64,000 bases of DNA from Macrostomum lignano (lineage: Eukaryota): NCBI GenBank assembly GCA_002269645.1, contig NIVC01001823.1, positions 169,783 through 233,782 on the forward strand, given 5' to 3'. Both the position numbers and the translations under genes were made by a program. Each line of letters opens with the position of its first letter. The first letter of the stretch is position 1. Positions 4,196 through 45,556 of the stretch are shown piece after piece. The notes beneath the pieces are model-generated. The model made no database searches, was not told where the DNA came from, and saw nothing but the letters and a program-made list of their open reading frames with translations.

Positions 4196-5391
4196 ATTTA
4201 ACATTGAGCAGTTTCATGTAAATTTAAGGAATCACAGTGAATCACATCTTTATTTTCTTCTAACAGTATTTTAGTCACTTTTTGTTGATCACCAATATGA
4301 GCATGTACATGAATTTTGACGTTTACATGTGAATGCATTAACTATTAACATTTAATAAATGAATCTAGGTGATGGGTGTGCAATGAAAAGCCAATAGTTT
4401 ATGCTATCTCTTCTGTACAAAAATTGAGTCTTATAGTTACAATACGAGCTACATCAATTTACAAATTGTGATGCAGATGCAATCCCTGATCAGCCCCATC
4501 AGGTTGCGAAAGTGACTCTGAAAAGCCGGAGAAAGAATTTCAGCATGCAGACAGGGCCTGTCGGAAAGGTCTCAGACTACGGTAATGCTTAAGCAATCGC
4601 AGAAGCTCACGACCCCACCTGACAATCTGCCCGAGACTGGCATGGGCTCTGCGTCCCAGGCCGCAACGATGGGGCTGCAGGTGACTGTCGGGCTACTGCT
4701 GAGCTGCTCGCTGACATCGTCGGCTGCTGGCACCGCTGGGGACTCGAGGTCTGAAGGCATGGCTGATATATTTGAAGTAGTGCGTCCTCCTCCTTCTGAA
4801 TGTTGCGCCTTCTCTTTCTATTAAGAAATTCTGTGGGTAATGCCCTTTGTGACAATACAACACTTGCCCCTGCAATATTGAGTATACTTTTATGAACCTG
4901 ATCGGGTAAAGGCAGTGGCTATACTCGTATAGAAACGTTTAGCAGAAGCGCAGCTGCAAAGAAGTAAAGCATATAAGTATAGCTACGCTCGTATACATGT
5001 ACAATATTTTTTGCAGACCATTTGCAGGCTATTACGAGCACCCGTAGACAATTCCAATTCCCAAAGTTACTGGTGTTGTATTTGAGAAGAAAAAAATTCT
5101 GTTAGAGAAAGAAAACAGAGCGCAACTGAGCTGAGCAAAACTGAATCGATAATTATTGAACGGTCTACCAAGTCTGCATGGCCACTCGATCTATCAGAAA
5201 AATTTATGATCAGAGTTGTGTTGTGAGTCGATAGTTTTTTTAGTTAGGCGCCGCACTAGTCAGCTGTTCCCTTCGCCCTCGCCCCAGGCTTCTGTCTGCC
5301 GCTGGGCAGTTGTCTGTCCCTTCTCGCCTGTCCTCTGGCAGGGTCGTTTCATAAACCCTAATTTTCACAACGTCAAAAATAAGCAATGCAG

Positions 5392-5520
5392 CAGATTTCA
5401 CAAGACCTAAATTTCACAAGACCTGAATTTCACAAGACCTAAATTTCACAAGCCCTAAATTTCACAAGACCTAAATTTCACAAGACCTAAATTTTACAAG
5501 ACCTAAATTTCACAACGCCT
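5392..5520. repeat. 16-bp minisatellite (acaagacctaaatttc), about 7-8 copies
   Basis: Direct inspection. Confidence 0.9.
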
Positions 5521-5809
5521 AAAAACACTATAGAGATAAAATCTTTCTTCTACAATCCTTCTGTATCTCCATAGTGTTTTTATGGTGACTCGCGACGGGG
5601 GGTCCTTCATTTTTTGGTGCAATCGATTTCCCTCTATAAATGCAGACCCCCTTCATGGCTTGGCTCAGACAAGCGTTTCGGCGTCCTCCTCTATATCTTT
5701 CCGTTTCGTCCTGCTTGACTTTCTCTCTCGTCTTAGTTATTTGCTTCAAAGAGCTCGGCACCTCACCGAAGGCTGCAACTCTGCGGAGTTGGTGGCAGGG
5801 GGCGCTTTC

Positions 5810-7763
5810 ATTAGGCCGAAATTTCACTTCGCCGAAAAGCAGCCTCTTTCACTAGGCCGAAACTTCACTTTGCTGAAATGACTAGCACGCTCTTTCATAA
5901 GGCCGAAACTTCACTTTGCTGAAATGACTAGCACGCTCTTTCATAAGGCCGAAACTTCACTAGGCCGAAACTTCACTAGGCCGAAACTTCACATTGCCGA
6001 AAATCATTTTAGCAGCCTCTTTTACTAGGCCGAAACTTCACATTGCCGAAATGACTAGCACGCTCTTTCATAAGGCCGAAACTTCACTTCGCCGAAAAGC
6101 AGCCTCTTTCACTAGGCCGAAACTTCACTTTGCCGAAATGACTTGCACGCTCTTTCATAAGGCCGAAACTTCACTAGGCCGAAACTTCACTAGGCCGAAA
6201 CTTCACTAGGCCGAAACTTCACTTTGCCGATATGACTAGCACGCTCTTTCATAAGGACGAAACCATTTTAGGAGCCTCTTTCACTAGGCCGAAACTTCAC
6301 ATTGCCGAAAATCATTTTAGCAGCCTTTTTTACTAGGCCGAAACTTCACTTTGCCGAAATGACTAGCACGCTCTTTCATAAGGCCGAAACTTCACATTGC
6401 CGAAAATCATTTTAGCAGCCTCTTTTACTAGGCCGAAACTTCACATTGCCGAAAATCATTTTAGCAGCCTTTTTTACTAGGCCGAAACTTCACTTTGCCG
6501 AAATGACTAGCACGCTCTTTCATAAGGCCGAAACTTCACATTGCCGAAAATCATTTTAGCAGCCTCTTTTACTAGGCCGAAACTTCACATTGCCGAAAAT
6601 CATTTTAGCAGCCTTTTTTACTAGGCCGAAACTTCACTTTGCCGAAATGACTAGCACGCTCTTTCATAAGGCCGAAACTTCACATTGCCGAAAATCATTT
6701 TAGCAGCCTCTTTTACTAGGCCGAAACTTCACATTGCCGAAAATCATTTTAGCAGCCTTTTTTACTAGGCCGAAACTTCACTTTGCCGAAATGACTAGCA
6801 CGCTCTTTCATAAGGCCGAAACTTCACATTGCCGAAAATCATTTTAGCAGCCTCTTTACTATGGTCGAAAGGGGATGTGAACTTAAGCGTCCAAAATGGA
6901 ACCGCAAGCAAGCAGTGACGATTTCTCTGCACCAGTTTCTTTATTTTGACCTGAGTGTTACTGCTACTAAAGTGGGAGCACGATATGGTCACTCAGTTTT
7001 TTGTATGGAATATTTTTGGCATTCCTGACTTCATTTGGGGTTAACTTTGATTTCTTATTATTTTCATTGCATCTTCTGTCCCAGTCGGATGGACTTTTAA
7101 GTTGTAGAGTGCTTAAGTCCTTGACTTCTGTGAAATTCAACCCGTATGTTTTTAGTATCAAAAAGACAATGTACAATAGTATATGATTTTTTATATGCCC
7201 CCATATTGTCTCTCCTATCTTCCCCATTTTTTTCTTAAATTGCTCGCTCATACCCTTCAGTCTAGCCGCTAGCGGGAACGAGCCCTATACAGGCCTGGTC
7301 CTGTTGTCTGCTATTGGTCTGTGCAAGGACTCGTGGATCTAGCAGGTTCTAGTTCTAGATCTCTGAGGTCTGTTTAATGATTAATGATTAATAATAGTGA
7401 TTAGTTATTAATCAATAATAATAATTATAATAATAATATAATGATAATAATTATTAACGATTAAAGATTCAGTTTAATGTTACCATGTTAGTTTCGGCCT
7501 AGTGAAAATGTTTTTTTCGGCAAAGTGAAGTTTCGGCCTAGTGAAAGAGGCTCCTAAAATGGTTTCGTCCTTATGAAAGAGCGTGCTAGTCATATCGGCA
7601 AAGTGAAGTTTCGGCCTAGTGAAGTTTCGGCCTAGTGAAGTTTCGGCCTTATGAAAGAGCGTGCTAGTCATCTCGGCAAAGTGAAGTTTCGACCTAGTGA
7701 AGTTTCGGCCTAGAGAAAAACTATGCTAAATGATTTTTCGGCAAAGTGAAGTTTCGGCCTAAT
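5810..7763. mobile_element. Foldback-type non-autonomous element with long, internally repetitive inverted arms (5810-6860 and 7490-7763) and an AT-rich spacer of about 630 bp
   Basis: Left arm is built from aggccgaaacttcac units and the right arm from their reverse complement. Both ends read attaggccgaaa. The diagnostic variant gccgatatgactagcacgctctttcataaggacgaaaccattttaggagcc occurs in both arms. No clear TSD and no transposase. Confidence 0.7.
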
Positions 7764-9326
7764 AGATCAACTCGAATACTTCCCAGGAGAGCTCAAGGTA
7801 GGCAGCTCTAGTGACTGATTGGGAAGCGAACAGCAAAGTACTTCAGTTGGATACGAAAAGCGAGACAATGCAATTTTGAAAGCTTTGCTCACGAGTAATA
7901 ACAAACAGCATTAATGAGGTAATGACTAAAAAGTTCCAGAAAAGTGCCGTAAAGACGGTCTCTGACTGTTTTTACCCTGGCTGCCTCTCTGGTAGCTTGT
8001 CTAAGGGTTGTGCGCAATCCGATTGGCCTAGCTTCGGCTAGCCCAATAATTAAGGGTCCGCTCCGGAGGGGCTGTGCCCAGTCTAAATTGACTAAAAATA
8101 AAACCCTATTCTTTTTTCGTACTCCAATAATTTGGCCATCGGCCCTGGGTTAGGGGGGGGGGTGCCCGGAGTGAGTTGGATATCTGGACTGCAGTGTGGC
8201 TAGGACGGGACTGAGCCCCCCGGTCGTACCCGCCCTGCAGGAAAGAAAATGACCAATTCACAAAGGTGCACGGTAGACCCAGTAGACTGCCAGCCCTGAG
8301 GCTGAGCCCCGGGTACAGGTTTGAGAGGAGGCCTGTGTGGGTTCAGGTGCTCCTCCAGCTATGTTTTAGTCCTTTACAGTATTGTTTTTATCTTAACCCG
8401 GCCTATGTAGCCATCCAATTTCTCGGAGTTATGAGCTCTGCCCACTGCCCGGTCCATCCTGCTCTGTCCTTGGGTCCATCTACTGGCTCCTGCTGACGGT
8501 CCCTGCCTGCGTGTCTCTGGCTCTCATCCTGACAGTGGATTGGTGTCCTGGGAAGGATGTTCGTCCCGTACCGGGGACAACCGGCTGAGTCCGGTGTCCT
8601 CTTGCCCCTGGTGCCTCTTCCCGACCCCTTGGCCTGGCCCCCAATAATGAGCTGGATAGGCGATGCCCTTGTGGCTTGCAGCCCTATAGGAGGGTTTTCT
8701 GGTTTACCTCTTGATAGGAGACTCGCCCTCAGATACAAGCCTTCCAGAATCCAGACTCGCTCCAATAGTTAGCCCTTTCCAAGACTTCTGGGTTTACCCG
8801 CTCTTGGACGGCTTTTAGTAATAAATCCAATTCTGTTTTTCGCGCACTCCGAGGACTTGTCTGCTGGGGGGGGGGGGGGTGGCCTGGGTGGACTCGGTCC
8901 TAGCACCGTCCCTGATTCCATTGTTGGTTTGGCGGTGTCTTGTACCGTAGGTTTGGGTCGACTTCGCCCTCCCGCGCTTTATGCGCGGGCCCAATCTCCA
9001 TCTCTCGGGGTATCTCGGGCTCTAAAAACAGCTAATGCTGTGCCCCTGGCAGTGCCCCTCGCAGCAGAGCCCTTCCATGTGGCTGATCCGCGGGTCCCCC
9101 CTTAGGACCCTTTCGTTTAACAACAACAACAAAAAAGTTCCAGAGCATGCACGCCTGCCTCCTGCGACGCCAAGATAAAGTCATTCGGCGATTAAAATGA
9201 TCGAGTTCATGTTGTCAGGACTGTCGCCATGGATTTTATGGTGGGGGGGAATCAAAACATTATGCAGTTACATGGACTTACGTGTACATTCTAGATATTA
9301 TTTTTCGAACCTGCGTTGTTTAAAAC

Positions 9327-10056
9327 TTACTCATTTTGGCGCCGCAGACACTCACTTTGGCGCCGCAGGCAGGCACTCACTTTGGCGCCGCAGGCAGGCA
9401 CTCATTTTGGCGCCGCAGGCAGGCACTTACTTTGGCGCCTCAGGCACTCATTTTGGCGTCAGAGACACTCATTTTTTCGCCGCAGGCAGGCACTCACTTT
9501 GGCGCCGCAGGCAGGCACTCATTTTGGCGCCGCAGGCAGGCACCTACTTTGGCGCCGCAGGCAGGCACTCATTTTGGCGCCGCAGGCAGGCACTCATTTT
9601 GGCGCCGCAGGCAGGCACTCATTTTGGCGCCGCAGGCAGGCACTCATGTTGGCGCCGCAGGCAGGCACTCACTTTGGCGCCGCAGGCAGGCACTCACTTT
9701 GGCGCCGCAGGCAGGCACTCATTTTGGCGCCGCAGGCAGGCACTCATTTTGGCGCCGCAGGCAGGCACTCATTTTGGCGCCGCAGGCAGGCACTCATTTT
9801 GGCGCCGCAGGCAGGCACTCATTTTGGCGCCGCAGGCAGGCACTCATTTTGGCGCCGCAGGCAGGCACTCATTTTGGCGCCGCAGGCAGGCACTCATGTT
9901 GGCGCCGCAGGCAGGCACTCACTTTGGCGCCGCAGGCAGGCACTCATTTTGGCGCCGCAGGCAGGCACTCATTTTGGCGCCGCAGGCAGGCACTCACTTT
10001 GGCGCCGCAGGCAGGCACTCATGTTGGCGCCGCAGGCAGGCACTCATGTTGGCGCT
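9327..10056. repeat. 25-bp minisatellite (ggcactcattttggcgccgcaggca), about 29 copies
   Basis: 25-bp period (ggcgccgcag at 9601, 9626, 9651). Explains the stop-free ORFs 9197-10258. Confidence 0.97.
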
Positions 10057-10939
10057 TTCCGTGACTCATAAATTCTCCTGTCAATATGTTATAGCGCCGT
10101 TGGATGGAATACACAGTTTGCAGCTTCACAGCTTCAGCCATCGTGAAGTGTGGACAGCGCCAGCTATCACCTCTTCAAATTGCACTCACATCCAGCTCTT
10201 ACGTGTACTTTTCGTTGCCTGTCTTGTCATACAGTTAGGAGCCCACTGTGCTGCGTGATCTTGTTCTTCTAGTGCTTCATCTGAGGTAACTATAGCTCTC
10301 CCATCTTCCTCCAAAAGCTGGCTAGCTTCCTGATCCCTCGATCTTCTTCTTCAGCTTCTCTTTCCTCTTTTGCAGCCAAAGCGACACCATGCAGTGTGAC
10401 ACTGGAAATGACTAAATGGCTGCTCGGGATTATTAAATTTAGTTGCTCCAAAGCCCATCATAGTTTGGACCATATTTTAGACTACTGAGAAATTAATGGA
10501 TGTGGCTGAGCTTTGCACTGCAGGTGTCTATACAGGTCCTTGCCTATACAGGTCATTGGCTAAAACGATTTCGTTGTTCAATTTTTGTTTTTTCCTTAGA
10601 TGTGCAGCTTGAGAAAGTCGATCACATTGACTGATTTAAAACACACAACATTGGCAAACAGTTGTACATGTACAGTACAGCGAATTATGTACAACGCGTA
10701 TACGTCACGCATGCAAACATGTAACAAAAAACTTAATTCGACAGTCCTTTGTGCAGTCATTGCAATCAATGAGTCTGCACGTTCCCATACCACTGCGGTG
10801 GAGCCCGACTCCTCGCACTCGCTCGAATCGCCGTCGGTGCTCCTTGATGCGGCAGCAGGTCTTCGCGACCGAGAGCCGTCACTGTCACTGAGGATCACGG
10901 CGGTGGTGCGATCTAGCGATTCTTGAGATCTCAGCCGGC

Positions 10940-17499: not shown

Positions 17500-18065
17500 T
17501 TCGCATTTATACGAGTATTCCAATTCTCATGATCCCAATATCATGATCCCTTATCCCAAAGTTTATAATTCCAAATCTTCAAATTTCATAATTCCACATC
17601 CCAAGTCCCCTAGTCCCAGAATCCCAGATTCCAAACTACGAGTATCACATATCCCAAAGCCTATGACCATGATCCCACATCCTCAAACTTCAGTATCCCA
17701 AATCCCAATATTTCATAATTCCAGAATCCCAGATCCCAAAGAATCTCACATCATATTATCTCTTGATCCCACATCCCAGTCCCAATATCTCATGATCCCA
17801 GAATTCCAGATCCCAAAGTATCTCACATCCCAATATCTCATGATCCCAGAATTCCAGATCCCAAAGTATCTCACATCCCAATATCTCATGATCCCAAAAT
17901 TCCAGATCCCAAAGTATCTCATAATCCCAGATCCCAAGTCAATGATCCCATATCTTCAAATTTCATGATCTCACATCCCAAATTTCATGGTCGCTACATC
18001 AGTATTTCATAATCAAATTTCATAAGTCCCGATATAAGATCTTTATCCCTATTATTTTATGATCC
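17500..18065. repeat. Degenerate atcccag-rich repeat in beta-catenin intron 1, including a 48-bp triplication
   Basis: Repeated atccca(g/a/t) motifs; the QYLMIPEFQIPKYLTS x3 ORF is an artefact of this repeat. Confidence 0.8.
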
Positions 18066-18129
18066 CAATCAGAGAACTTAGATCCTCATCATCCCTAACA
18101 AAATATCCCCCATCGGTCACCGTCTGCAG

Positions 18130-18547
18130 GCATCCGCAGACCAAGCTTGAGATCTGCTCAGCCGGCGGCCCAGTGGAGCTGGTGCACATTCTGCTCAACT
18201 ACAACTACGAGAAGCTGCTATGGACTACCACTCGTGTGCTCAAGGTGCTCAGCGTCTGCCCGGAGAGCAAGGTGTCCGTGATCAGGGCTAACGGAATCGA
18301 CGCCCTGACCAAGCACCTGACCCGAGCTCCGCACGAGCCCCGCGGCCCCAACCCATCGCCGCGGCTGCTGCACAACTGCCTGTGGACGCTGAGGAACCTG
18401 TCTGACGCTGCCACCAGCCAGGAGATTGCCGGCCCCCTGTTCGAGCGGCTTATCAACCTGCTGGCCTCCTCAGATCACACTGTGGTATCGTGCAGCGCCG
18501 GCATTCTGTCAAATCTGACCTGCAATAATCAGAAGAGCAAGCAGCAG
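18130..18547 (+). CDS. CTNNB1: beta-catenin coding exon 2
   Basis: Acceptor tctgcag|G restores the Arg codon. Contains YEKLLWTTTRVLKVLSVC, NCLWTLRNLSDAAT and CSAGILSNLTCNN. Donor CAG|GTGAGC. Confidence 0.97.
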
Positions 18548-18739
18548 GTGAGCGTGTCAGCGGGTGTCATAAAAATGCCTAGATATTGAAGGTCAAAGCT
18601 TTAAACACTGGTGCCTTAGTTGCTTTGAGAGATATACATTTATGAGCTTTCAAATTGTTGGACATGCTGCCAAAGTTAGTGTCAGGTGACGCCTTAGAAT
18701 CAATTGATGTTAGGAGTTCTCATAAGGAATGAAAAAATT

Positions 18740-19500
18740 AGTGTGAGGAGTCGTCAAAAAGAATCAAAATTAGTGTCAGAAATCGTCATAAAGAATCAAA
18801 TTTCGTGTCAGAAGGCACCATAAAAAATCAAAATTAGTGTCAGAAATCGTCATAAAGAATCAAATTTCGTGTCAGAGGGCACCATAAAAAATCAAAATTA
18901 GTGTCAGATGGCGCCATAAAGAATCAAAATTTGTGTCAGATGGCGCCATAAAGAATCAAAATTAGTGTCAGAAGGCGCCATAAAGAATCAAAATTTGTGT
19001 CAGATGGCGCCATAAAGAATCAAAATTTGTGTCAGATGGCGCCATAAAGAATCAAAATTTGTGTCAGATGGCGCCATAAAGAATCAAAATGGCGCCATAA
19101 AGAATCAAAGTTCGTGTTAGAAGGCGCCATAAAGAATCAAAATTAGTGTCAGATGGCGCCATAAAGAATCAAAATTTGTGTCAGATGGCGCCATAAAGAA
19201 TCAAAATTTGTGTCAGATGGCGCCATAAAGAATCAAAATGGCGCCATAAAGAATCAAAGTTCGTGTTAGAAGGCGCCATAAAGAATCAAAGTTCGTGTTA
19301 GAAGGCGCCATAAAGAATCAAAATTAGTGTCAGAAAAGGTGCCATAAAGAATCAAAATTAGTGTCAGAAAAGGTGCCATATAAACAATCAAAACTAGTGT
19401 CAGGAAAGTGGCCATAAAGTATCAAAACTAGTGTCAGAAGGCGCCATAAAGAATCAAAATTAGTGTCAGATAACGCCAAAGAATCAAAAATAAGTGTCAG
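18740..19500. repeat. About 32-bp minisatellite (gtgtcagatggcgccataaagaatcaaaatt) in beta-catenin intron 2
   Basis: Direct inspection. Confidence 0.95.
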
Positions 19501-19579
19501 ATAATGGAACGTTTCCTAGAACTAGCTTTCGGTGACCTTAAATGACCCCAAGCCGCTGCTCAACTCAACCAAACCGCAG

Positions 19580-19912
19580 GTGTGCGCCAGCGGCGGCATC
19601 AAAGCCCTAATCGAGGCCATCAAGCGCTCCAACGATCAGGAGGACATCATCGAGCCCTGCGTGTGCGCCCTGCGCCACCTGACTGTCAGACACGACGAGG
19701 CCTGCCGAGCCCAGGAGTCGGTTCGCTTCTTCGACGGTCTGTCGGTTTTGTCTCGCTTGTTCGACGTGACCACCACCCTGTCAGTGCGCAAAGCCATCAT
19801 TAACCTGGTGCGCAACCTGGCTTTGTGCCCTGGCAACTGCGCCGATCTCAGGGAGAAGGGCGTTGTGGCTCAGCTGTGCGGAGTGCTGCAGTCCGCTTAT
19901 CGGGATATGCAG
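19580..19912 (+). CDS. CTNNB1: beta-catenin coding exon 3
   Basis: Acceptor ccgcag|GTG. Contains EDIIEPCVCALRHLT and LVRNLALCPGN. Donor CAG|GTCTGT. Confidence 0.96.
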
Positions 19913-20074
19913 GTCTGTTGGGTGGGGATTGTAATAATTGTAAATTATCTCATCCCTGTTCTGTGGGATTTCAGTTTCTTGACAATCCCCAATTTCTGGG
20001 ATTTTAGTTCCCTATTCTTATCGATCAATGCTTAAAGATACCATATGGAAAGATGCCTGTCTTTTAAATATCCT

Positions 20075-20430
20075 CCGGATTATGATTTATGAGATCCCAG
20101 CCCTTCAAGTATCCACTCAGATTATGATTTATGAGATCCCAGCTCTTTAAATATCCCCTCCAGATTATGATTTATGAGATCCCAGCCTTTTAAACATCCC
20201 CCAGATAATTATTTATGAGATCCCAGTCTTTTAATATCCCTTCCAGATTATGATTTATGAGATCACAGCCCTTTAAATATCCCCCAGATTATGATTTATG
20301 AGATCCCAGCCCTTTAAATATTCCCCCGATTATGATTTATGAAATCCTAGCCCTTTAATATCCCTTCCAGATTATGATTTATGAGATCCCAGCCCTTTAA
20401 TGTCCCCCCCAGATTATGATTTATGAGATA
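20075..20430. repeat. About 40-bp minisatellite (cagattatgatttatgagatcccagccctttaaatatccc) in beta-catenin intron 3
   Basis: About 9 copies visible. Confidence 0.93.
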
Positions 20431-37864: not shown

Positions 37865-37985
37865 CAGCACCAGAGCCAGTCCTGACCCACCTGTCAGCAC
37901 CAGAGCCAGTCCTGACCCACCTGTCAGCACCAGAGCCAGTCCTGACCCACCTATCAGCACCAGAGCCAGTTCTGACCCACCTGTA
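37865..37985. repeat. 30-bp minisatellite x4 (cagcaccagagccagtcctgacccacctgt) in the SOD2 intron
   Basis: Direct inspection. Confidence 0.93.
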
Positions 37986-38006
37986 CTCATTGAAATTGCA
38001 TTCCAG

Positions 38007-38192
38007 GACCCGCTAAAGGCCACCACAGGCCTGGAGCCGCTGCTGGGCATAGATGTGTGGGAGCACGCCTACTACCTGCAGTACAAGAACGTTCGCCCAG
38101 ACTACGTCAAGAGCATCTGGAAGGTGATCAACTGGGACGACGTGGAGAATCGCCTGGACCAGGCCAAGAGTGGCGGAGTTAAGCTGGCTTGA
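38007..38192 (+). CDS. SOD2: MnSOD exon 2 (spliced 717 nt = 238 aa)
   Basis: Acceptor ttccag|GAC. Contains the DVWEHAYY metal-ligand signature. TGA at 38190-38192. Confidence 0.97.
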
Positions 38193-40205: not shown

Positions 40206-40656
40206 CTCCACACTGGAAAAAACCGGCAGGGGACCCATAGGAGCCAGAAGGGTTTTAGGGGCTAACCCCTATAATATTTCAGTAGCACCTGTACTATTTT
40301 TGTACTACAGTGCAGTAAGTGCAGTAAAACACTGGTGACTCAATGTCTCGATAAATAAAAAAACAATATATATATATCAGAATGGTAATTAATTATAAGC
40401 CAATAAGCCAAATAGCAGTACAAAACTAAATTGTTATTCTTGCTACTTAATTGCGGCTACGCTAATCAGAAAATGGCACTGCATGATTACGAAACAGCTA
40501 GTACAAACAATGTACCTGGATTGTTCCTGGAAACTTATGGCTGCTTTTACATGTACAAGCGTCTGTCTAAATTCGCTTTTTTCGTCCTAAATCCTGACGT
40601 CTAGAGCATAGATAAGGTGACGAAATATCAAGCACTCTTGCCGTGATGGGGTTTGC

Positions 40657-40737
40657 GATCGTGATGACGCTTGCGATCGTGATGACACTTGCGATCGTGA
40701 TGACACTTGCGATCGTGATCGTATTCGCGATCGTGAT
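40657..40737. repeat. 18-bp repeat x4 (gatcgtgatgacacttgc) next to the LINE 3' tail
   Basis: Direct inspection. Confidence 0.85.
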
Positions 40738-42257
40738 GGTGTTGTTTTTTACTCTCGCCGGGGTCAAGCTGGACGGACAGCAACAGGAACTTAGCGACTT
40801 CAATGGGGTTGCGCCACTGATCCGAAGGCTCCAGCTCGGTGGGGTGAGCCGGTCAGTTAAAGAGATGCAGGCTGTCATGCAAGGCCGCGCCACACTCAGG
40901 GCAGCTGGGAGGCGTCTCAGGGTTCAGCCGGTGCTGGTAGATGCGAAGCAAGGGGCTGAAACCTGAGCGCAGCTGGGCGAGCAGGCAGAATGTACGGCGC
41001 GGCAGAGAGCGTTCAGACTCGCAGATATCAGGGCGGAGACCAACGACGCGGTTAGGAGGTAGGCTGTCGATATAATCCAGTACGATGTGCGAATTTTGTG
41101 CTCGTCTCGCCCTGTCCCAGGCTGCCGCGTCGTCGATGACCGCCGGGGCGGTGACTGGCTGCCAGGAATCATCAAAGAACGGTGCTGTAAAGATGGACGG
41201 CTTCATGCGCCGGCGAGGAGCCGGGCAGGCGGAGAGATGATGACAGGGGTGCTCAGGGCAGCGGGAGGCCAGAAGGAACTGGAGAGAGGAGCCTGTTGTG
41301 CTGCTGGACCGGGAGCATCCGAGTCTCGCAGTGGAGGTCGGCCACGGCACCGCTGACGGTGCAGCCCGTGACGCACCGAATGGCCGCGTTTTGGACCGCC
41401 TGGAGCCCGGTCCAGGAGGAGGACGAGATAGTAGGTCCCCAAACAGGAGCATCGTAGTTGAGGATGCTGCGTGAAATCGCCCTAAAGGTGTTGAGAAGCA
41501 GCTCCTTGCAGCAACCCCAACCGCTGCCCGCCAAGCAACGGAGGACGCTATTACGCTTGCGGGCCTTCTGGGTCGTCGCGTTGACGTGGCGGCAAAACGT
41601 CATTTTCGGGTCAAAGATGACTCCCAGGATTTTAGGATAGAGGGCCTGGGGTAGTCTGAAGCCGTCAAAGTTGACCTCGAGGGCCCTGGCGTATTCCCGT
41701 TGGTGCCGAGATTTTACTACATTTTACTGCCGAGACCTTGAGCTTGCAGGCGTCGAGAAACGGCGCCAGACGCGCCAGGTAGACGTTAAGTTGCTCCTGG
41801 ATGCGCGAGATGGAAGCGGAAGACGCAGCCACAGTCAGGTCGTCGGCGTATCCGATAAGGCTTGAGTCAGGGTCGTCCGGCATAGGGGTGTCCTTCAGGT
41901 AGAAAGCGAAGAGAAGCGGGTTGATCGCGCTGCCATAGGGGGACTCCCATACGGACTTGGCGCCAGGCGGACTTGCAGTCGCGCAGCACGGTGCGGGCGT
42001 GACGACCAAGAAGGTAGTTGGAGAGTTGCAGGTTCGGCAGGTCGGAGTTAAAGATGTCGGTAATGAGCTCGTAGTGATCCACACAATCGATAGCGGCTTT
42101 CAAGTCGAGGGCAACTGTGCCTGTTCTCGCCGGGTGTTTAGCATGGCAGAAACCAGTGCTGATCTGCTCAACGAGCTGGCACAGGGCAGTGGTGGTCGAG
42201 CGCATCGGGCGAATGCCGTGCTGCCAGGCTGGGAGTTTCAGGTTATCTGTCAGCAGG
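40738..42257 (-). mobile_element. 5'-truncated, frameshifted non-LTR retrotransposon (I/Jockey-group-like LINE): RT, post-RT domain, C-terminal CxxC..H motif and aaaaacaac tail
   Basis: Peptides QHGIRPMRSTTTAL, VALDLKAAIDCVDH, GSAINPLLFAFYL, GYADDLTV, LAGSGWGCCKELLLNTFRAISRSILNYDAPVW, LQAVQNAAIRCVTG and CPECGAALHDSLHLFN are spread over several frames. Confidence 0.92.
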
Positions 42258-42287
42258 GGTTTCCCGTGTTGAGTCAAATTAAGCCGC

Positions 42288-42327
<40 letters not shown>
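42258..42327 (-). rRNA. 70-nt fragment of the universally conserved 18S rRNA core (orphan fragment, not a gene)
   Basis: Minus strand reads TAAAGGAATTGACGGAAGGGCACCACCAGGAGTGGAGCCTGCGGCTTAATTTGACTCAACACGGGAAACC, matching the canonical eukaryotic SSU sequence as I recall it. Flanks are not rRNA. Confidence 0.95.
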
Positions 42328-43520
42328 TTTGTTTCCACTAGGCTCATATAATGATCCTAAACCTTGCCTAGCGTAGCTCTAGTGTCAAAAAAGGGGTGGC
42401 ACTAGGCATATGGGCCTTAAATCCGAAAGGCCTTACAAACACGGCTTGAACCTCGGAGTGCTGAGATTTGTAATGTTTTTCCGACCTTGACTGGATCAAG
42501 TCCGAGTCCTTTCACTTTATTGAGAGTCGTGGTTAGAACCGTGTCCAAGGCACCGCACCGACAGCGATTCCAACGACTTTAACGCCGCCAGAGATGTTCA
42601 AAAGCTCGGCGACTTGACCCCTCAGACCTTCATATTTAGCCTCTTTAAACCGTTCCTTTGATTGTAGCACATTCTCATTCGATTCATAGGGTACAGTGAC
42701 GTCTATGATCGCTCCATCGTTGCCCTTCCTGAAAATCAGGTCGGGCTTAAAGTTCTCTAGATCTTTACGAACGAGCCGTTCTCTCCAAACTTCCCAACCA
42801 TTGTCCACCAGGGCTTTGCCAAGATAGCTCGTAATCCGCAATAAAATTGTGCCGGCGGCATTGGGCTAGTCTGGTAAACGGGCATTCATTCAAAACATGC
42901 TCAGTTTCTACCGCGTTTCCACAGCGACGGCATTTCAGAGTCTCAAAGTCTTGGGTGGATGAATTGGCGCGTCTCAACAGTTCTTGTAACCAACTTGTTG
43001 ATAGACACGTATTCACCCGCCTTCACTACACCGTCTTCGCCATGTAGCCAATAAGGTCTAACCGCGCTTTCCCACCGTACGCTCATGAGCTTCCCTCTGG
43101 GTGCTCAAATAGGCCTGCTCATATTTATCCTGTATAACCTTTTTTTGCGGATTTAACGTAAAGTCCACGAGTGAGACTACTTTCATAAGTTGGAATTTTT
43201 TCACTTATGTTGGCTACAACTGGGTCCGAAGAGCTCGCCATGCTTTCGCAGGCAGCACGCCGCATCAGCGGAATCGTGAGCTCAAAATCAGGTAGCCCGA
43301 GGCTTCTGTACTTCGAGAAGTACAGAGAAATCGGGTCCTCGCGGGGGAGAGCAGCAATTCTGGCCACTTGCTCCAGTCTCGGCACCAGTCCAGTTACTTA
43401 TACGAGTGCTAAAACTCAAGATAGCTTCTTACGATGATGCGGTGGATCCTTTAGCACAGCCAGAAGTTCTTCGACTTCCAACTCTGAGGCAGCTTGGTGG
43501 AAAAGGCATTCGTTCATCCT
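42328..43520 (-). mobile_element. 5'-truncated R2-clade (RLE-type) non-LTR retrotransposon: thumb region, CCHC knuckle, PD-(D/E)xK endonuclease and about 200 nt of 3' UTR; 3' junction is into 18S sequence (R8-like)
   Basis: Peptides LPREDPISLYFSKYRSLGLP..SSDPVV, KCRRCGNAVETEHVLNECPFTRLAQCRRHN and KPDLIFRKGNDGAIIDVTVPYE...KEAKY. Left boundary is sharp; right boundary is approximate. Confidence 0.88.
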
Positions 43521-45556
43521 CCGTCATCTCTTTCAGTTTATACAGATTTCACAAAATGACCCAGTTCTGACGATAAATAAGAGCACTCAAAACATAGCTT
43601 TACTCAATTGAGTAAGGCCCAATGCCGAAGCGACAAACCATTGCGTTGATTCATGGTTGCTCATATTCGATATTTGACTGATATATTCAAGAGGATGGAC
43701 AACAGACAAAAACATCCTACATGTAGATTATGAAGATAATCGGAAAATCTCTGTTCAAACAATTTATGAAAATTGGGGAAATTATCTAAAGAATTTTACA
43801 ACTTTGTAAATGTAACATTCAATAAAGCAAATGACCCATAAAGTTATTAATTTGGACTTCAATAAGACACAAATTACCTAAATTTTAGCAGCTATCGAGT
43901 CAATAATATTTTTTCCTAAGTATGTGAAAGCAAAGGAAAAAACAGTTCAGTTGGAAAACAAACCTAATTTCTGACCAAAGAAGCGACCATCTGGACCAGT
44001 AAGAGTCCAGATGCAAAAATCCTGTAAATTGTTGTCAATGATCAAAAAGCAAGTGACTAACCAAAAGAGCGGAAGTGAATTCAATGTACGAGCCGTACTC
44101 TATGTTTTCAGCATATTATCTGACAAGTGAAGAACAAAAAATGTAAGAATGTAAGAAATGTAAATGTAAAAATGTAGGCTGAAGGAACAAAAATGTAATA
44201 CACTAAATTTGTGAGCAGTGCTCACAAACATGAATCGCTAAAAATGATTAGATGCCAATGGAAACAAAACGAACTCAGACTCAACCTTCCCTTTAGGAGC
44301 ACCAGAAATCCATGATCGCGACACAGCATAATAACCAATAGAAAGATTTCCTGACGGGTAGGGATGCATTGACAAATCACGGCGAAATATCAAATCTTCC
44401 CCAGAAACTGAGTTGGAAGTGACTATTTACAACTGCACAACTTTACAATTAACAAGGCTTGAGAGAGAACTTAAAAAGAACGCATCACCATCAACTGATT
44501 ACTGACATGTTTTAAAATACCTCTTTCTGTCGGACACCTCGTGTTCTTAAGAACACCAAGATGGTTTTCAAACTGAAAAGCAAATAAATGAATCAAATGA
44601 GCCGTATAACCTAACAAACCCATGCAAATGCAACAATAAATGACAATTGTAGCTTAATGAATGTACACCAAACAACAATGACAAAATTGGAACCAAAATT
44701 TTCGAGAGATCGATGTGCACATTCATACGAATACCAATCACTGAACCTCGAAGAAGTAAATACATAAAATGCATAGTGTAGCTTGAGGAAGTGTAGATAA
44801 AAACAGAAATTTCAATCAGAGGCGACATGACTCACTGATTATCTTCACGATATGCTCGGTAAAATTAATCAGTGCGACTATCATGTACATGCAGTAGTTG
44901 GAAAAATCATTGCGATCCTAAATTCGAGTGGTTGTACAACGACAATATGAGCATTCTTTGGCTGCTGTATGACCAAGAACACCTTTAACAATAAGCACGA
45001 GCATGTGTATCACCAATGAGTCGCATTCTAACAACTTTGACATTACACCCAGAAATGTTCAAGCCAACGTAACAGCTTGACTTCCCCGACAAGTTTACGC
45101 AGAAACAACTGCAGATTGGCCCTTCACTTGGCCTTTATACAATGTTAAAGTGAATCACGTGAATGGAAAAGAAGTGCCTTCAATCAAATGACACTAAAAT
45201 TGGCCACAGGACTCAAGTCAGGAGCACTTCGAAAAGCGGCAGACGACCAAAATTTACTTCACAAGAGATAACAAATTGTTTATTTGTGGGATAGGTTAAT
45301 TAATTGATGTTCATAACAAAACTCAATGTTGTTCTTGAGTGAAATGTAAGCATAAGTTCCTGAACCAATGATAAAATTGGTTCCATACGAACGTCTCCTT
45401 AGTGTAAGATAAATGATAAAAAAATAATTAGAATCACGCACAAATGTAATTTTATCCCAAATGGCACTATTATTCTGACGCTTAAAAAACCCTGCTTGCG
45501 CACATACCAATAACCAATCTGATAATCTGCACACTCTCTTAATCCGACCCATTCAG

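Follow-up and report, generated by a model that had tools for sequence, protein, structure and literature searches.

A dead, 5'-truncated retrocopy of a putative R8-type retrotransposon joined to 18S rRNA sequence in Macrostomum lignano

On the minus strand of the 64-kb stretch of Macrostomum lignano DNA analysed here (the window), positions 42258-43520 carry the tail of an R2-superclade open reading frame (ORF), 5'-truncated and frameshifted, which adjoins 69 nt of 18S rRNA (42327-42259). This copy is very probably a dead, 5'-truncated and ectopic retrocopy of ~1.0-1.2 kb, derived from an 18S-rDNA-specific (R8-type) member of the R2 superclade with the life cycle and the template-switch origin proposed below. 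The initial annotation had described an element with a restriction-like endonuclease (RLE) running directly into 18S, and this is confirmed by direct reading of the minus strand, by Rfam, and by protein matches to R2; its proposal that an R2-clade family targeting 18S is present in the host is likewise supported by two full-length copies that lie in complete rDNA units and have the 3' junction seen in the window. As a resident rDNA insertion, the window copy itself does not hold up, being located outside rDNA with only 69 nt of 18S, followed by another LINE (element B) and AT-rich DNA.

Along the minus strand, a CCHC knuckle is followed by the RLE, a 3' UTR of ~80 nt, a decayed A-tail, and 18S, and a C-terminal CCHC knuckle preceding a PD-(D/E)XK RLE is the arrangement of the R2 superclade (R2/R8/R9). 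The securely homologous part (Table 1) spans the last ~295 ORF codons, the 3' UTR, and the decayed A-tail. In an alignment of 20 proteins (A1), the window knuckle matches the invariant columns C989, C992, H1001, and C1006, and the RLE columns P1050, D1051, K1083, K1086, and Y1087 are also invariant, the RLE core residues of the window copy being K-PD-L (42748-42737), the D of IIDVTV (42703-42701), and K-Y (42637-42632). The conceptual translation matches the solved R2 proteins R2Tg (E=2.5e-14) and R2Bm (E=4.5e-6) over the CCHC and RLE region, and in an exhaustive HMMER search it matches an R2-like protein of M. lignano (E=1.6e-143); judged by sequence, the R2 identity of the fragment is far beyond chance. 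The window translation had no match in a word-indexed protein search, and Pfam, which has no usable RLE model, made no RLE call on the window, the only hit being a sub-threshold AHJR-like match. The profile version of the word-indexed search returned close relatives of the first sequence only. The window contains a single copy of the element, with five frameshifting indels (+1, -2, -8, +7, +5), one in-frame 3-nt deletion, and in-frame stops, and this copy is dead and without function.

Table 1. Coordinates of the features of the composite insertion and its surroundings in the window
Feature	Position	Strand	Basis
R8-type (R2-superclade) element, securely homologous part	42328..43303	-	blastn/global alignment to L001 7423-8402; tblastn with P0001
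Upstream continuation of the fragment	43304..43567	-	profile HMM; tblastn; composition
CCHC zinc knuckle CRRCGNAVETEHVLNEC	42882..42932	-	reading; aligned to CRHC...H...C of R2Tg
Restriction-like endonuclease core K-PD...D...K-Y	42632..42748	-	reading; R2 alignments; tblastn
ORF stop codon	42419-42417	-	direct reading
Element 3' UTR ending ...GAGCCTAGTGG	42335..42416	-	alignment
Decayed A-tail AAACAAA	42334-42328	-	direct reading
18S rRNA gene fragment TAAAGGAATTGACGG...CAACACGGGAAAC	42259..42327	-	Rfam; alignments; starts at the conserved 3' junction of the lineage
Element B, unrelated non-LTR retrotransposon	40642..42258	-	Pfam RVT_1 on two ORF pieces; translation; Tandem Repeats Finder
Weak candidate TSD, upstream copy GAGTGCTCTTATTTATCGTCA	43568..43588	-	local alignment; at AT-rich/insert composition boundary
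Weak candidate TSD, downstream copy GAGTGCT-TGATATTTCGTCA	40617..40637	-	directly after the repeat tail of element B

The nearest relative of the window copy is a 1156-aa M. lignano protein (P0001; 83% amino acid and ~86% nucleotide identity), of which two full-length copies are found inside 18S genes, in contigs L001 and L003. According to Rfam and the sequences themselves, both contigs hold complete rDNA units in which the 5' part of 18S, the element, and the 3' part of 18S are followed by 5.8S and 28S, and each copy is thus flanked by 18S upstream as well as downstream. Identity between these two copies is 99%, and the L001 element has one ORF (4839-8309). The encoded protein possesses three N-terminal zinc fingers, which align to the N-terminus of R2Tg, a reverse transcriptase (RT) domain (RVT_1, residues 515-770 in Pfam), the CCHC knuckle, and the RLE, and its best match is the A-lineage element R2Tg (E=2.8e-90). 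The single ORF, N-terminal zinc fingers, and central RT of the R2 superclade are therefore seen in the full-length protein, the window copy being truncated, while the Pfam domain Exo_endo_phos (the N-terminal AP endonuclease of R7 and the R1 clade) is absent from P0001, which has an RLE instead. Site-specific insertion in 18S, the feature of R8, is present in L001 and L003 with a 3' junction identical to that of the window; the canonical R2 insertion in 28S (TTAAGG/TAGC) is not found for this family, the element sitting in 18S and the 28S site of L003 holding a different R2-type element. Compared with L001, the window copy is identical at 755/874 coding positions and at 74/79 positions of the 3' UTR (blastn and global alignment), and its 3' UTR (42335-42416, with the end ...TATATGAGCCTAGTGG) has 94% identity to the rDNA copies. 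The coding comparison gives a dN/dS of 0.17 and a dS of 0.455, in contrast to the near-identical 18S part and 3' UTR, and we infer from this that the source of the window copy, once functional and under selection, was a subfamily or orthologue other than the rDNA copies sequenced in M. lignano.

Insertion in the 18S genes is in sense orientation at GCTGAAACT^TAAAGGAATTGACGG or, in longer notation, GCTGAAACT^TAAAGGAATTG (that is, ...AAACT/TAAAGGAATTG, with an upstream 18S flank of ...GCAAAGCTG(AAACT)). The full 18S fragment of the window reads TAAAGGAATTGACGGAAGGGCACCACCAGGAGTGGAGCCTGCGGCTTAATTTGACTCAACACGGGAAAC, starts at position 1186 of the Rfam model SSU_rRNA_eukarya, and is identical to M. 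lignano 18S at 67/69 positions, the aligned columns extending a few bases past its 3' end; its identity to the 18S of another eukaryote is 98.7% over 75 nt. It presumably corresponds to about positions 912-980 of E. coli 16S. The 3' junctions read GTGG(A)13/GGAATTG in L001, GTGG(A)9TAAA/GGAATTG in L003, and GTGGAAACAAATAAA/GGAATTG in the window, the two rDNA copies sharing the window's junction before GGAATTGACGG and one of them also keeping the window's T (A-tail/TAAAGGAATTGACGG). The terminus GAAACAAATAAA, initially noted as resembling the upstream target, consists of an A-tail mutated by two substitutions and of 4 nt (TAAA) that belong to real 18S; the sister copy in L003 has GTGG(A)9TAAAGG. 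The 64-kb window holds no other rRNA sequence, and no rRNA gene in it reached the Rfam gathering score.

The window copy lacks the element's 5' end, and the 5' junction is represented by its relatives. In L001, 26 nt of upstream 18S are duplicated in tandem, two transcript-like contigs (L011 and L012) begin within 18S, 30 nt upstream, and terminate in poly(A), and the 5' UTR of the M. lignano element contains 12 nt exactly complementary to upstream 18S, a match reached in 0-1/500 shuffles. The same junction phenomena have been described for R2 and hydra (PMC3774820). In Rfam, the M. lignano element, its 5' UTR included, matches neither a ribozyme nor another RNA family, and a long exact complement to upstream 18S is missing in most of the other lineage members examined. 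By analogy with R2 biology, elements of the family would lack a promoter of their own and be co-transcribed with pre-rRNA, the element's 5' end probably being freed by a self-cleaving ribozyme with a P1 stem that draws on 18S ~26-30 nt upstream. The protein would then nick the 18S site and copy the RNA through TPRT (target-primed reverse transcription), leaving an A-rich tail beside TAAAGG.

It is plausible that the fragment has its 5' limit at 43520, as initially set. Homology to the L001 element at the DNA level ends at 43303, with none in 43304-43567, and the R2-like ORF (thumb/linker, HRKKLS...LPREDPISLY...SLGLP) is recognisable up to ~43436: a profile HMM built from 20 proteins of the lineage gives an alignment starting at ~43331, with its envelope at 43373, and a tblastn alignment with P0051 reaches 43436. 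The GC content of 43304-43567 (47%) is element-like compared with the 33% GC of the flank, and the break in base composition, together with a weak candidate target-site duplication (TSD), places the end of the fragment near 43567, with 43437-43567 as a putative part of it. No TSD above chance was found around the DNA-homology break at 43303. The possibility that 43304-43567 is the upstream half of element B, into which the R8-type copy had inserted, was considered and rejected on three grounds, namely that this segment has no RT signal, that its GC content is unlike that of B, and that lineage proteins align to it as R2 linker.

Element B (58-62% GC) is 5'-truncated within its RT domain, directly adjoins the 18S fragment, ends in an 18-nt tandem repeat (40738-40642, Tandem Repeats Finder), and has no similarity to P0001 in tblastn; the R8-type fragment and B lie head-to-tail in the same orientation. 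The two breaks in GC content (43590 and 40640) fall on an imperfect direct repeat of 21 nt, which contains 4 differences in 21 nt and has a local alignment score of 12, a value that 107/2000 shuffles and 145/2000 random segments of the window also attain (p about 0.05-0.07), and which is only suggestive as a TSD flanking the composite. A single composite insertion, a one-event chimera with a weak candidate TSD, is the most likely reading of this arrangement. In this event, an element/18S co-transcript reaching 69 nt into downstream 18S would have been reverse-transcribed outside rDNA, most likely when the RT of the unrelated LINE, inserting B at an AT-rich site, switched from B RNA to the co-transcript, and the resulting insertion (R8-type tail and 69 nt of 18S, then B) would later have decayed by roughly 3-7%. 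Chimeric retrocopies formed by LINE template switching are known, for example L1-U6, and the R2 RT jumps between templates in vitro. The composite resembles L1-U6-type chimeras in having a 5'-truncated LINE on the 3' side, fused head-to-tail and in the same orientation to the copy of an abundant nuclear RNA within one insertion; it differs in that the captured RNA would be a retrotransposon/18S co-transcript and in that the flanking TSD is weakly supported. Two considerations count against a template-switch origin: template jumps usually land on the 3' end of an RNA, and no natural 3' end of 18S is known to us at 69 nt beyond the junction.

An origin at the DNA level, in which an rDNA "orphon" was moved with its element by recombination or repair and B inserted later into the 18S part with loss of the remaining 18S, appears unlikely, although the window also contains an rDNA-spacer-like segment (8450-9129, with 76-86% identity to the spacer of M. 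lignano), which indicates dispersed rDNA-derived DNA in the region, and the weakly supported TSD of a composite event would also fit such a history. Such an origin is opposed by the failure of 18S to resume, either directly downstream of the 69 nt or after the tail of B, and by the lack of a TSD flanking B alone, the end of the 18S fragment and the post-tail sequence having only a resemblance that is explained by the tail repeat unit of B. The 5' truncation and same orientation of both elements are, moreover, typical of reverse-transcription products, and the edges of the insert fall on sharp GC breaks. The value of the window copy lies in what it would preserve in fossil form, an element/18S co-transcript and possibly a template switch between elements.

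Elements of seven further clusters (P0003, P0004, P0155, P0169, P0028, P0024, and P0036), each <50% identical to the others and derived from metagenomic and other public assemblies, have one and the same insertion point in 18S, which is common to 8/8 members with readable flanks, the Macrostomum element included. In a Kimura-distance neighbour-joining (NJ) bootstrap tree, the 18S-site elements form one clade (bootstrap 98) apart from canonical 28S R2, the reference for which was P0029 (L013) with its canonical 28S junction. At the junctions of the lineage, no more than about -1 to +1 nt of the target site is deleted or duplicated. Because the Macrostomum element nests in this clade, with all flank-read members at one 18S position, an old 18S-specific lineage passed on by inheritance is more likely than a recent switch in Macrostomum.

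In the literature searched, R2-superclade elements are described as almost invariably 28S-specific, with R8 (18S, Hydra) and R9 listed as the sole re-targeted lineages (PMC5035012). R8 (R8Hm-A and R8Hm-B) of Hydra magnipapillata is an R2-superclade element residing in the genes for 18S rRNA (Kojima et al. 2006, via PMC5035012 and PMC3636483), and R9 of bdelloid rotifers is an R2-superclade element at a different 28S site (PMC5035012). In the literature searched, R8 is reported from Hydra only and the R8Hm site is given as "18S" without coordinates, and the recent surveys and reviews searched make no mention of 18S-inserted R2 relatives or of Macrostomum. The Macrostomum family is similar to Hydra R8 in its single-ORF R2-type organization with an RLE, its 18S rDNA specificity, its R2A-type N-terminus with three zinc fingers, and the upstream-rRNA tandem duplications at 5' junctions (PMC3774820), as in L001; it differs in that its host belongs to the phylum Platyhelminthes and that the lineage also occurs in many other eukaryotes. 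The R8-type label is putative, being given by 18S target and architecture, with Hydra R8 compared by description only. That 18S specificity arose in the Macrostomum family and its clade independently of Hydra R8, the family being convergent rather than R8, is quite improbable: the named relatives in cluster-name look-ups comprise only M. lignano and a butterfly R2-like protein, none from Hydra, but the presence of eight such divergent clusters at one site and in one clade argues for an old specificity under stable inheritance, the protein shows the A-lineage architecture with three zinc fingers, with R8Hm placed inside R2A by Kojima et al. (PMC5035012), and a second 18S-targeting origin in the same sub-lineage would be less parsimonious.

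Canonical R2 (28S, CTCTTAAGG/TAGCCAAATGCC; R2Tg and R2Bm) has the same protein architecture and catalytic motifs as the Macrostomum family and presumably the same life cycle of rRNA co-transcription followed by TPRT, and direct comparison of the sites finds a CTTAA(A)GG-like core in both targets, whereas the target is in 28S for the one and in 18S for the other. R7 of Anopheles gambiae is reportedly 18S-specific as well, and is said to belong to the R1 clade and to carry an AP-type endonuclease. R7 is alike in its 18S rDNA insertion but differs in having an N-terminal AP endonuclease, in contrast to the C-terminal RLE and R2-type zinc fingers of the Macrostomum family. R9 is similar in being an R2 derivative with a changed rDNA site, which is in 28S as opposed to 18S, and it has an exceptionally long TSD compared with the about -1 to +1 nt of the 18S lineage.

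It is hardly credible that the element is not site-specific and that its 18S piece is a chance flank, a copy-specific 3' transduction, or an assembly artefact, as the single copy in the window and the existence of non-specific R2 families in flatworms (R2NS-1_SMed, PMC5035012) might suggest, given the independent full-length copies with 18S on both sides in two M. lignano contigs, the same junction in seven other lineages, and the state of the window copy, which is 14% diverged from the rDNA copies and frameshifted and so is no mis-joined read from an active copy.

We lean slightly towards the broader view that R8-type elements form an old, monophyletic, and widespread branch of R2, which would always occupy one universally conserved spot of SSU rRNA beside the nucleotides of the central pseudoknot and coexist with 28S R2 in one flatworm rDNA unit, and whose co-transcripts may occasionally be captured by other LINEs into ectopic chimeras. 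If this is true, the R8-type lineage is more than a Hydra curiosity and would be a natural source of R2-type proteins for which 18S is a second safe-harbour target. The clade spans a model flatworm and at least seven other divergent lineages and offers a natural series for the change of DNA specificity in R2, which is of practical relevance since work is under way to engineer R2 proteins as tools that insert transgenes site-specifically. In L003, the canonical 28S site is occupied by the separate R2-type element (17961-20181) beside the 18S element, so the 18S and 28S types coexist as distinct families, and two rDNA specialists can share one rDNA unit.

On the minus strand of the window, a decayed R2-superclade ORF tail is followed by its 3' UTR and then, without a break, by 18S rRNA sequence, which confirms that the element-18S junction reported in the initial annotation is real. 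The fragment is identified as 18S because Rfam places it in SSU_rRNA_eukarya from model position 1186 onward, 67 of its 69 nt are identical to Macrostomum 18S, and it matches the 18S of another eukaryote with 98.7% identity over 75 nt. No rRNA gene was found at the Rfam threshold in the whole 64 kb window, and each of the three pieces of the feature is single-copy within the window. Assignment to the R2 clade is upheld by the frameshift-corrected translation, which across the knuckle and endonuclease span matches the solved R2 proteins R2Tg (E=2.5e-14) and R2Bm (E=4.5e-6), and by the nearest relative, P0001 (PAA49614.1 of Macrostomum lignano; 1156 aa, 83% identity, E=1.6e-143), the top match among 465 when 1.84 billion representatives were searched exhaustively with HMMER. 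The RT domain of P0001 is central, and the protein is itself best matched by the three-zinc-finger A-lineage R2Tg (E=2.8e-90) and carries N-terminal fingers alignable with those of R2Tg.

Features of the window copy and its surroundings, with U1 snRNA genes of M. lignano rDNA loci
Feature	Position	Strand	Basis
Flanking AT-rich DNA, 33% GC, upstream of the feature	down to about 43590	-	base composition
Decayed ORF stretch, 47-48% GC	below about 43590	-	direct reading and composition
CCHC knuckle CRRCGNAVETEHVLNEC	42932-42882	-	direct reading
RLE (restriction-like endonuclease) core	KPD 42748-42740; D 42703-42701; K.KY to 42632	-	direct reading
ORF stop codon	42419-42417	-	direct reading
3' UTR, 82 nt, ending ...GAGCCTAGTGG	then AAACAAA 42334-42328	-	
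18S fragment TAAAGGAATTGACGGAAGGGCACCACCAGGAGTGGAGCCTGCGGCTTAATTTGACTCAACACGGGAAAC	42327-42259	-	unbroken continuation of AAACAAA
Start of element B (second, unrelated LINE): different sequence, 58-62% GC	from 42258	-	
AT-rich DNA again	beyond element B repeat tail	-	
Minisatellites (window, kb)	22.7-25.5, 27.4-28.6, 29.0-29.9, 30.2-31.6, 38.6-39.1, 39.5-40.2, 46.6-47.9, 48.5-50.5, 54.6-55.3, 57.6-58.5		
U1 snRNA	L001 15908-16069; L003 5085-5247; L003 23135-23297	rRNA-gene strand	

The proposal that this host harbors an 18S-targeting family is borne out by two M. lignano contigs encoding the full-length protein, L001 (NIVC01003830.1) and L003 (NIVC01001214.1), whose elements (99% identical) split the 18S gene and have the 3' junction of the window copy. 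In L001, Rfam shows 18S sequence to about 4575; beyond the element the 18S resumes at model position 1118 (8376-9056), and 5.8S and the whole of 28S follow. L003 has the same layout. Rather than heterogeneous non-rDNA flanks, both loci have rDNA junctions, and the family is supported as 18S-specific. The 3' junction reads ...GAGCCTAGTGG(A)13 followed by GGAATTGACGG in L001, ...GAGCCTAGTGG(A)9TAAA followed by GGAATTGACGG in L003, and ...GAGCCTAGTGGAAACAAATAAA followed by GGAATTGACGG in the window copy. Comparison of the three revises the target-like terminus initially described, of which TAAA is already 18S (18S being GCTGAAACTTAAAGG) and the remainder is a short A-tail in which one A has become C.

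Further top matches, each representing a separate 50%-identity cluster, were sampled by contig. The 18S site is occupied by P0003 (L002, an ENA assembly with a complete rDNA unit), P0004 (L004, JGI metagenome), P0155 (L005, ENA), P0169 (L006-8, ENA), P0028 (L009/10, marine metagenomes), P0024 (L011/12, transcript-like Logan contigs) and P0036 (L014, ENA), and P0029 (L013, ENA) lies at the canonical 28S R2 site, with flanks ...GACTCTCTT and TAGCCAAATGCC. The 18S flank position is identical at all loci except L013; the 3' flank starts with TAAAGGAATTGACGG wherever readable, L001 being the sole exception, and the 5' flank ends in GCTGAAAC, GCTGAAACT or GCTGAAACTT. From these flanking sequences, the lineage target would be GCTGAAACT^TAAAGGAATTGACGG, with a duplication or deletion of -1 to +1 nt. 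A neighbour-joining tree on 919 columns unites all eight 18S-labelled proteins in a single clade (bootstrap 98%) and places the 28S element outside it. The target lies in the universal SSU 907-926 region, a few bases from central-pseudoknot nucleotides, which would explain the wide host range of 18S-site elements. Around the nick, a CTTAA(A)GG core is common to both targets, AAACTTAAAGGAATTG in 18S and CTCTTAAGGTAGCC for R2 in 28S (L001 8399-8412; L003 1970-1994), and could bear on how specificity shifted.

Targeting of 18S as a principle has been known since 2006 from R8. The only re-targeted R2 lineages given are R8 (Hydra, 18S) and R9 (rotifer, 28S) (PMC5035012). For flatworms, the R2s described are either non-specific or specific for 28S or a spacer (PMC5035012, PMC3636483), and neither Macrostomum nor R2s inserted in 18S come up in two texts from 2026, one a survey and the other a review. 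Compared with R8Hm by description, the M. lignano family has the same R2-superclade architecture, A-lineage fingers and 18S specificity, and what appears to be new for the R8 type on this comparison is a new host phylum and a broad environmental distribution. In addition, an R2-type (RLE) insert of ~2.2 kb occupies the canonical 28S site of L003 (17961-20181; flanks ACTATGACTCTCTTAAG and TAGCCAAATGCC) in the same rDNA unit as the 18S R8-type element, and M. lignano therefore has both families. P0158 and P0159, both UniProt models, are chimeric between the two element types. For a specialist, it would be useful and mildly surprising that the 18S lineage is so broad and that it shares one rDNA unit with R2.

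The 18S-site elements are sense-oriented within 18S, and no promoter is evident in them. L011 and L012, which resemble processed transcripts, begin 30 nt upstream, within 18S, and finish in poly(A), the upstream 18S is tandemly duplicated (26 nt) at the 5' junction of L001, and a 12-nt stretch of the M. lignano 5' UTR is perfectly complementary to upstream 18S (0-1 of 500 shuffles reach the same); because of these observations, the family probably works through a processed co-transcript with 18S, whose 5' end would lie about 26-30 nt upstream in 18S. The 5' processing step may be performed by a ribozyme, with no Rfam ribozyme match in the M. lignano element; HDV-like ribozymes cleaving in upstream rRNA have been described for R2 and hydra elements (PMC3774820), and their 5' end in upstream rRNA resembles the pattern of the 18S-site family. 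Homology to R2Bm and R2Tg suggests that the RLE/RT protein would carry out nicking and target-primed reverse transcription.

The window copy is identical to L001 at 86% of CDS positions (755/874), 94% of the 3' UTR (74/79) and 97% of the 18S part (67/69). From the coding differences, dN/dS is 0.17 (dS 0.455, dN 0.077), so that selection was acting while most of the divergence built up, in a source that was either a distinct subfamily or the orthologue of a related Macrostomum species. After insertion, neutral decay amounts to at most about 3-7%, with which five frameshifting indels are consistent, and the fragment is an ordinary dead retrocopy. Its initial 5' limit is reasonable because profile and P0051 alignments reach about 43436, across a poorly conserved linker region and past the end of L001 DNA homology at 43303.

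The initial reading holds for the 18S-targeting family, but the window copy itself is ectopic and lies in a same-orientation fusion with element B, which is 5'-truncated. Element B codes for a further reverse transcriptase from its middle to its end (Pfam RVT_1) and has as its tail an 18-nt tandem repeat, (CATCACGATCGCAAGTGT)n (40738-40642, minus strand), with no 18S sequence after it. At both GC boundaries lies a copy of a 21-nt imperfect direct repeat (GAGTGCTCTTATTTATCGTCA, 43588-43568; GAGTGCT-TGATATTTCGTCA, 40637-40617), which is marginally above chance (107/2000 shuffles reach the score). A single RNA-mediated event with a template switch is tentatively favoured, at a little under even chances; at an AT-rich site, the reverse transcriptase of element B would have copied B RNA first and then switched to an element/18S co-transcript. 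A DNA-level origin, with element B inserted later into an rDNA fragment, seems rather unlikely.

Element B (40642-42258, minus strand; non-LTR, 58-62% GC) has a C-terminal CPECG...H...H motif. The 8-mer CTGAAACT occurs at 42232-42225 (minus strand), about 27 nt into element B from its junction with 18S, and also directly upstream of the 18S insertion site (GCTGAAACTTAAAGG); its presence in element B may be a coincidence or a weak ectopic recognition cue. Elsewhere, 8450-9129 of the window matches the M. lignano rDNA intergenic spacer (L003 5737-6516; L001 547-1319) at 76-86% identity; it is either a spacer-derived fragment that has dispersed or a repeat that the spacer also contains, and it adjoins a 25-nt minisatellite (9303-10180) absent from the L003 and L001 spacers compared. 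All M. lignano rDNA spacers seen contain a U1 snRNA gene on the strand of the rRNA genes. The rDNA unit of L006, which comes from one of the hosts of 18S-site elements, has a linked 5S rRNA gene (777-898) between the 28S end and 18S. Minisatellite arrays with periods of 8-49 nt are unusually abundant in the window, and one of them, an 8/12-nt array at 30.2-31.6 kb, has an inverted second copy at 38.6-39.1 kb (88-90% complementary). An ORF end at about 37940-38192 (plus strand) reads as a typical Mn/Fe superoxide dismutase C-terminus and probably represents the final exon of a SOD2-like host gene.
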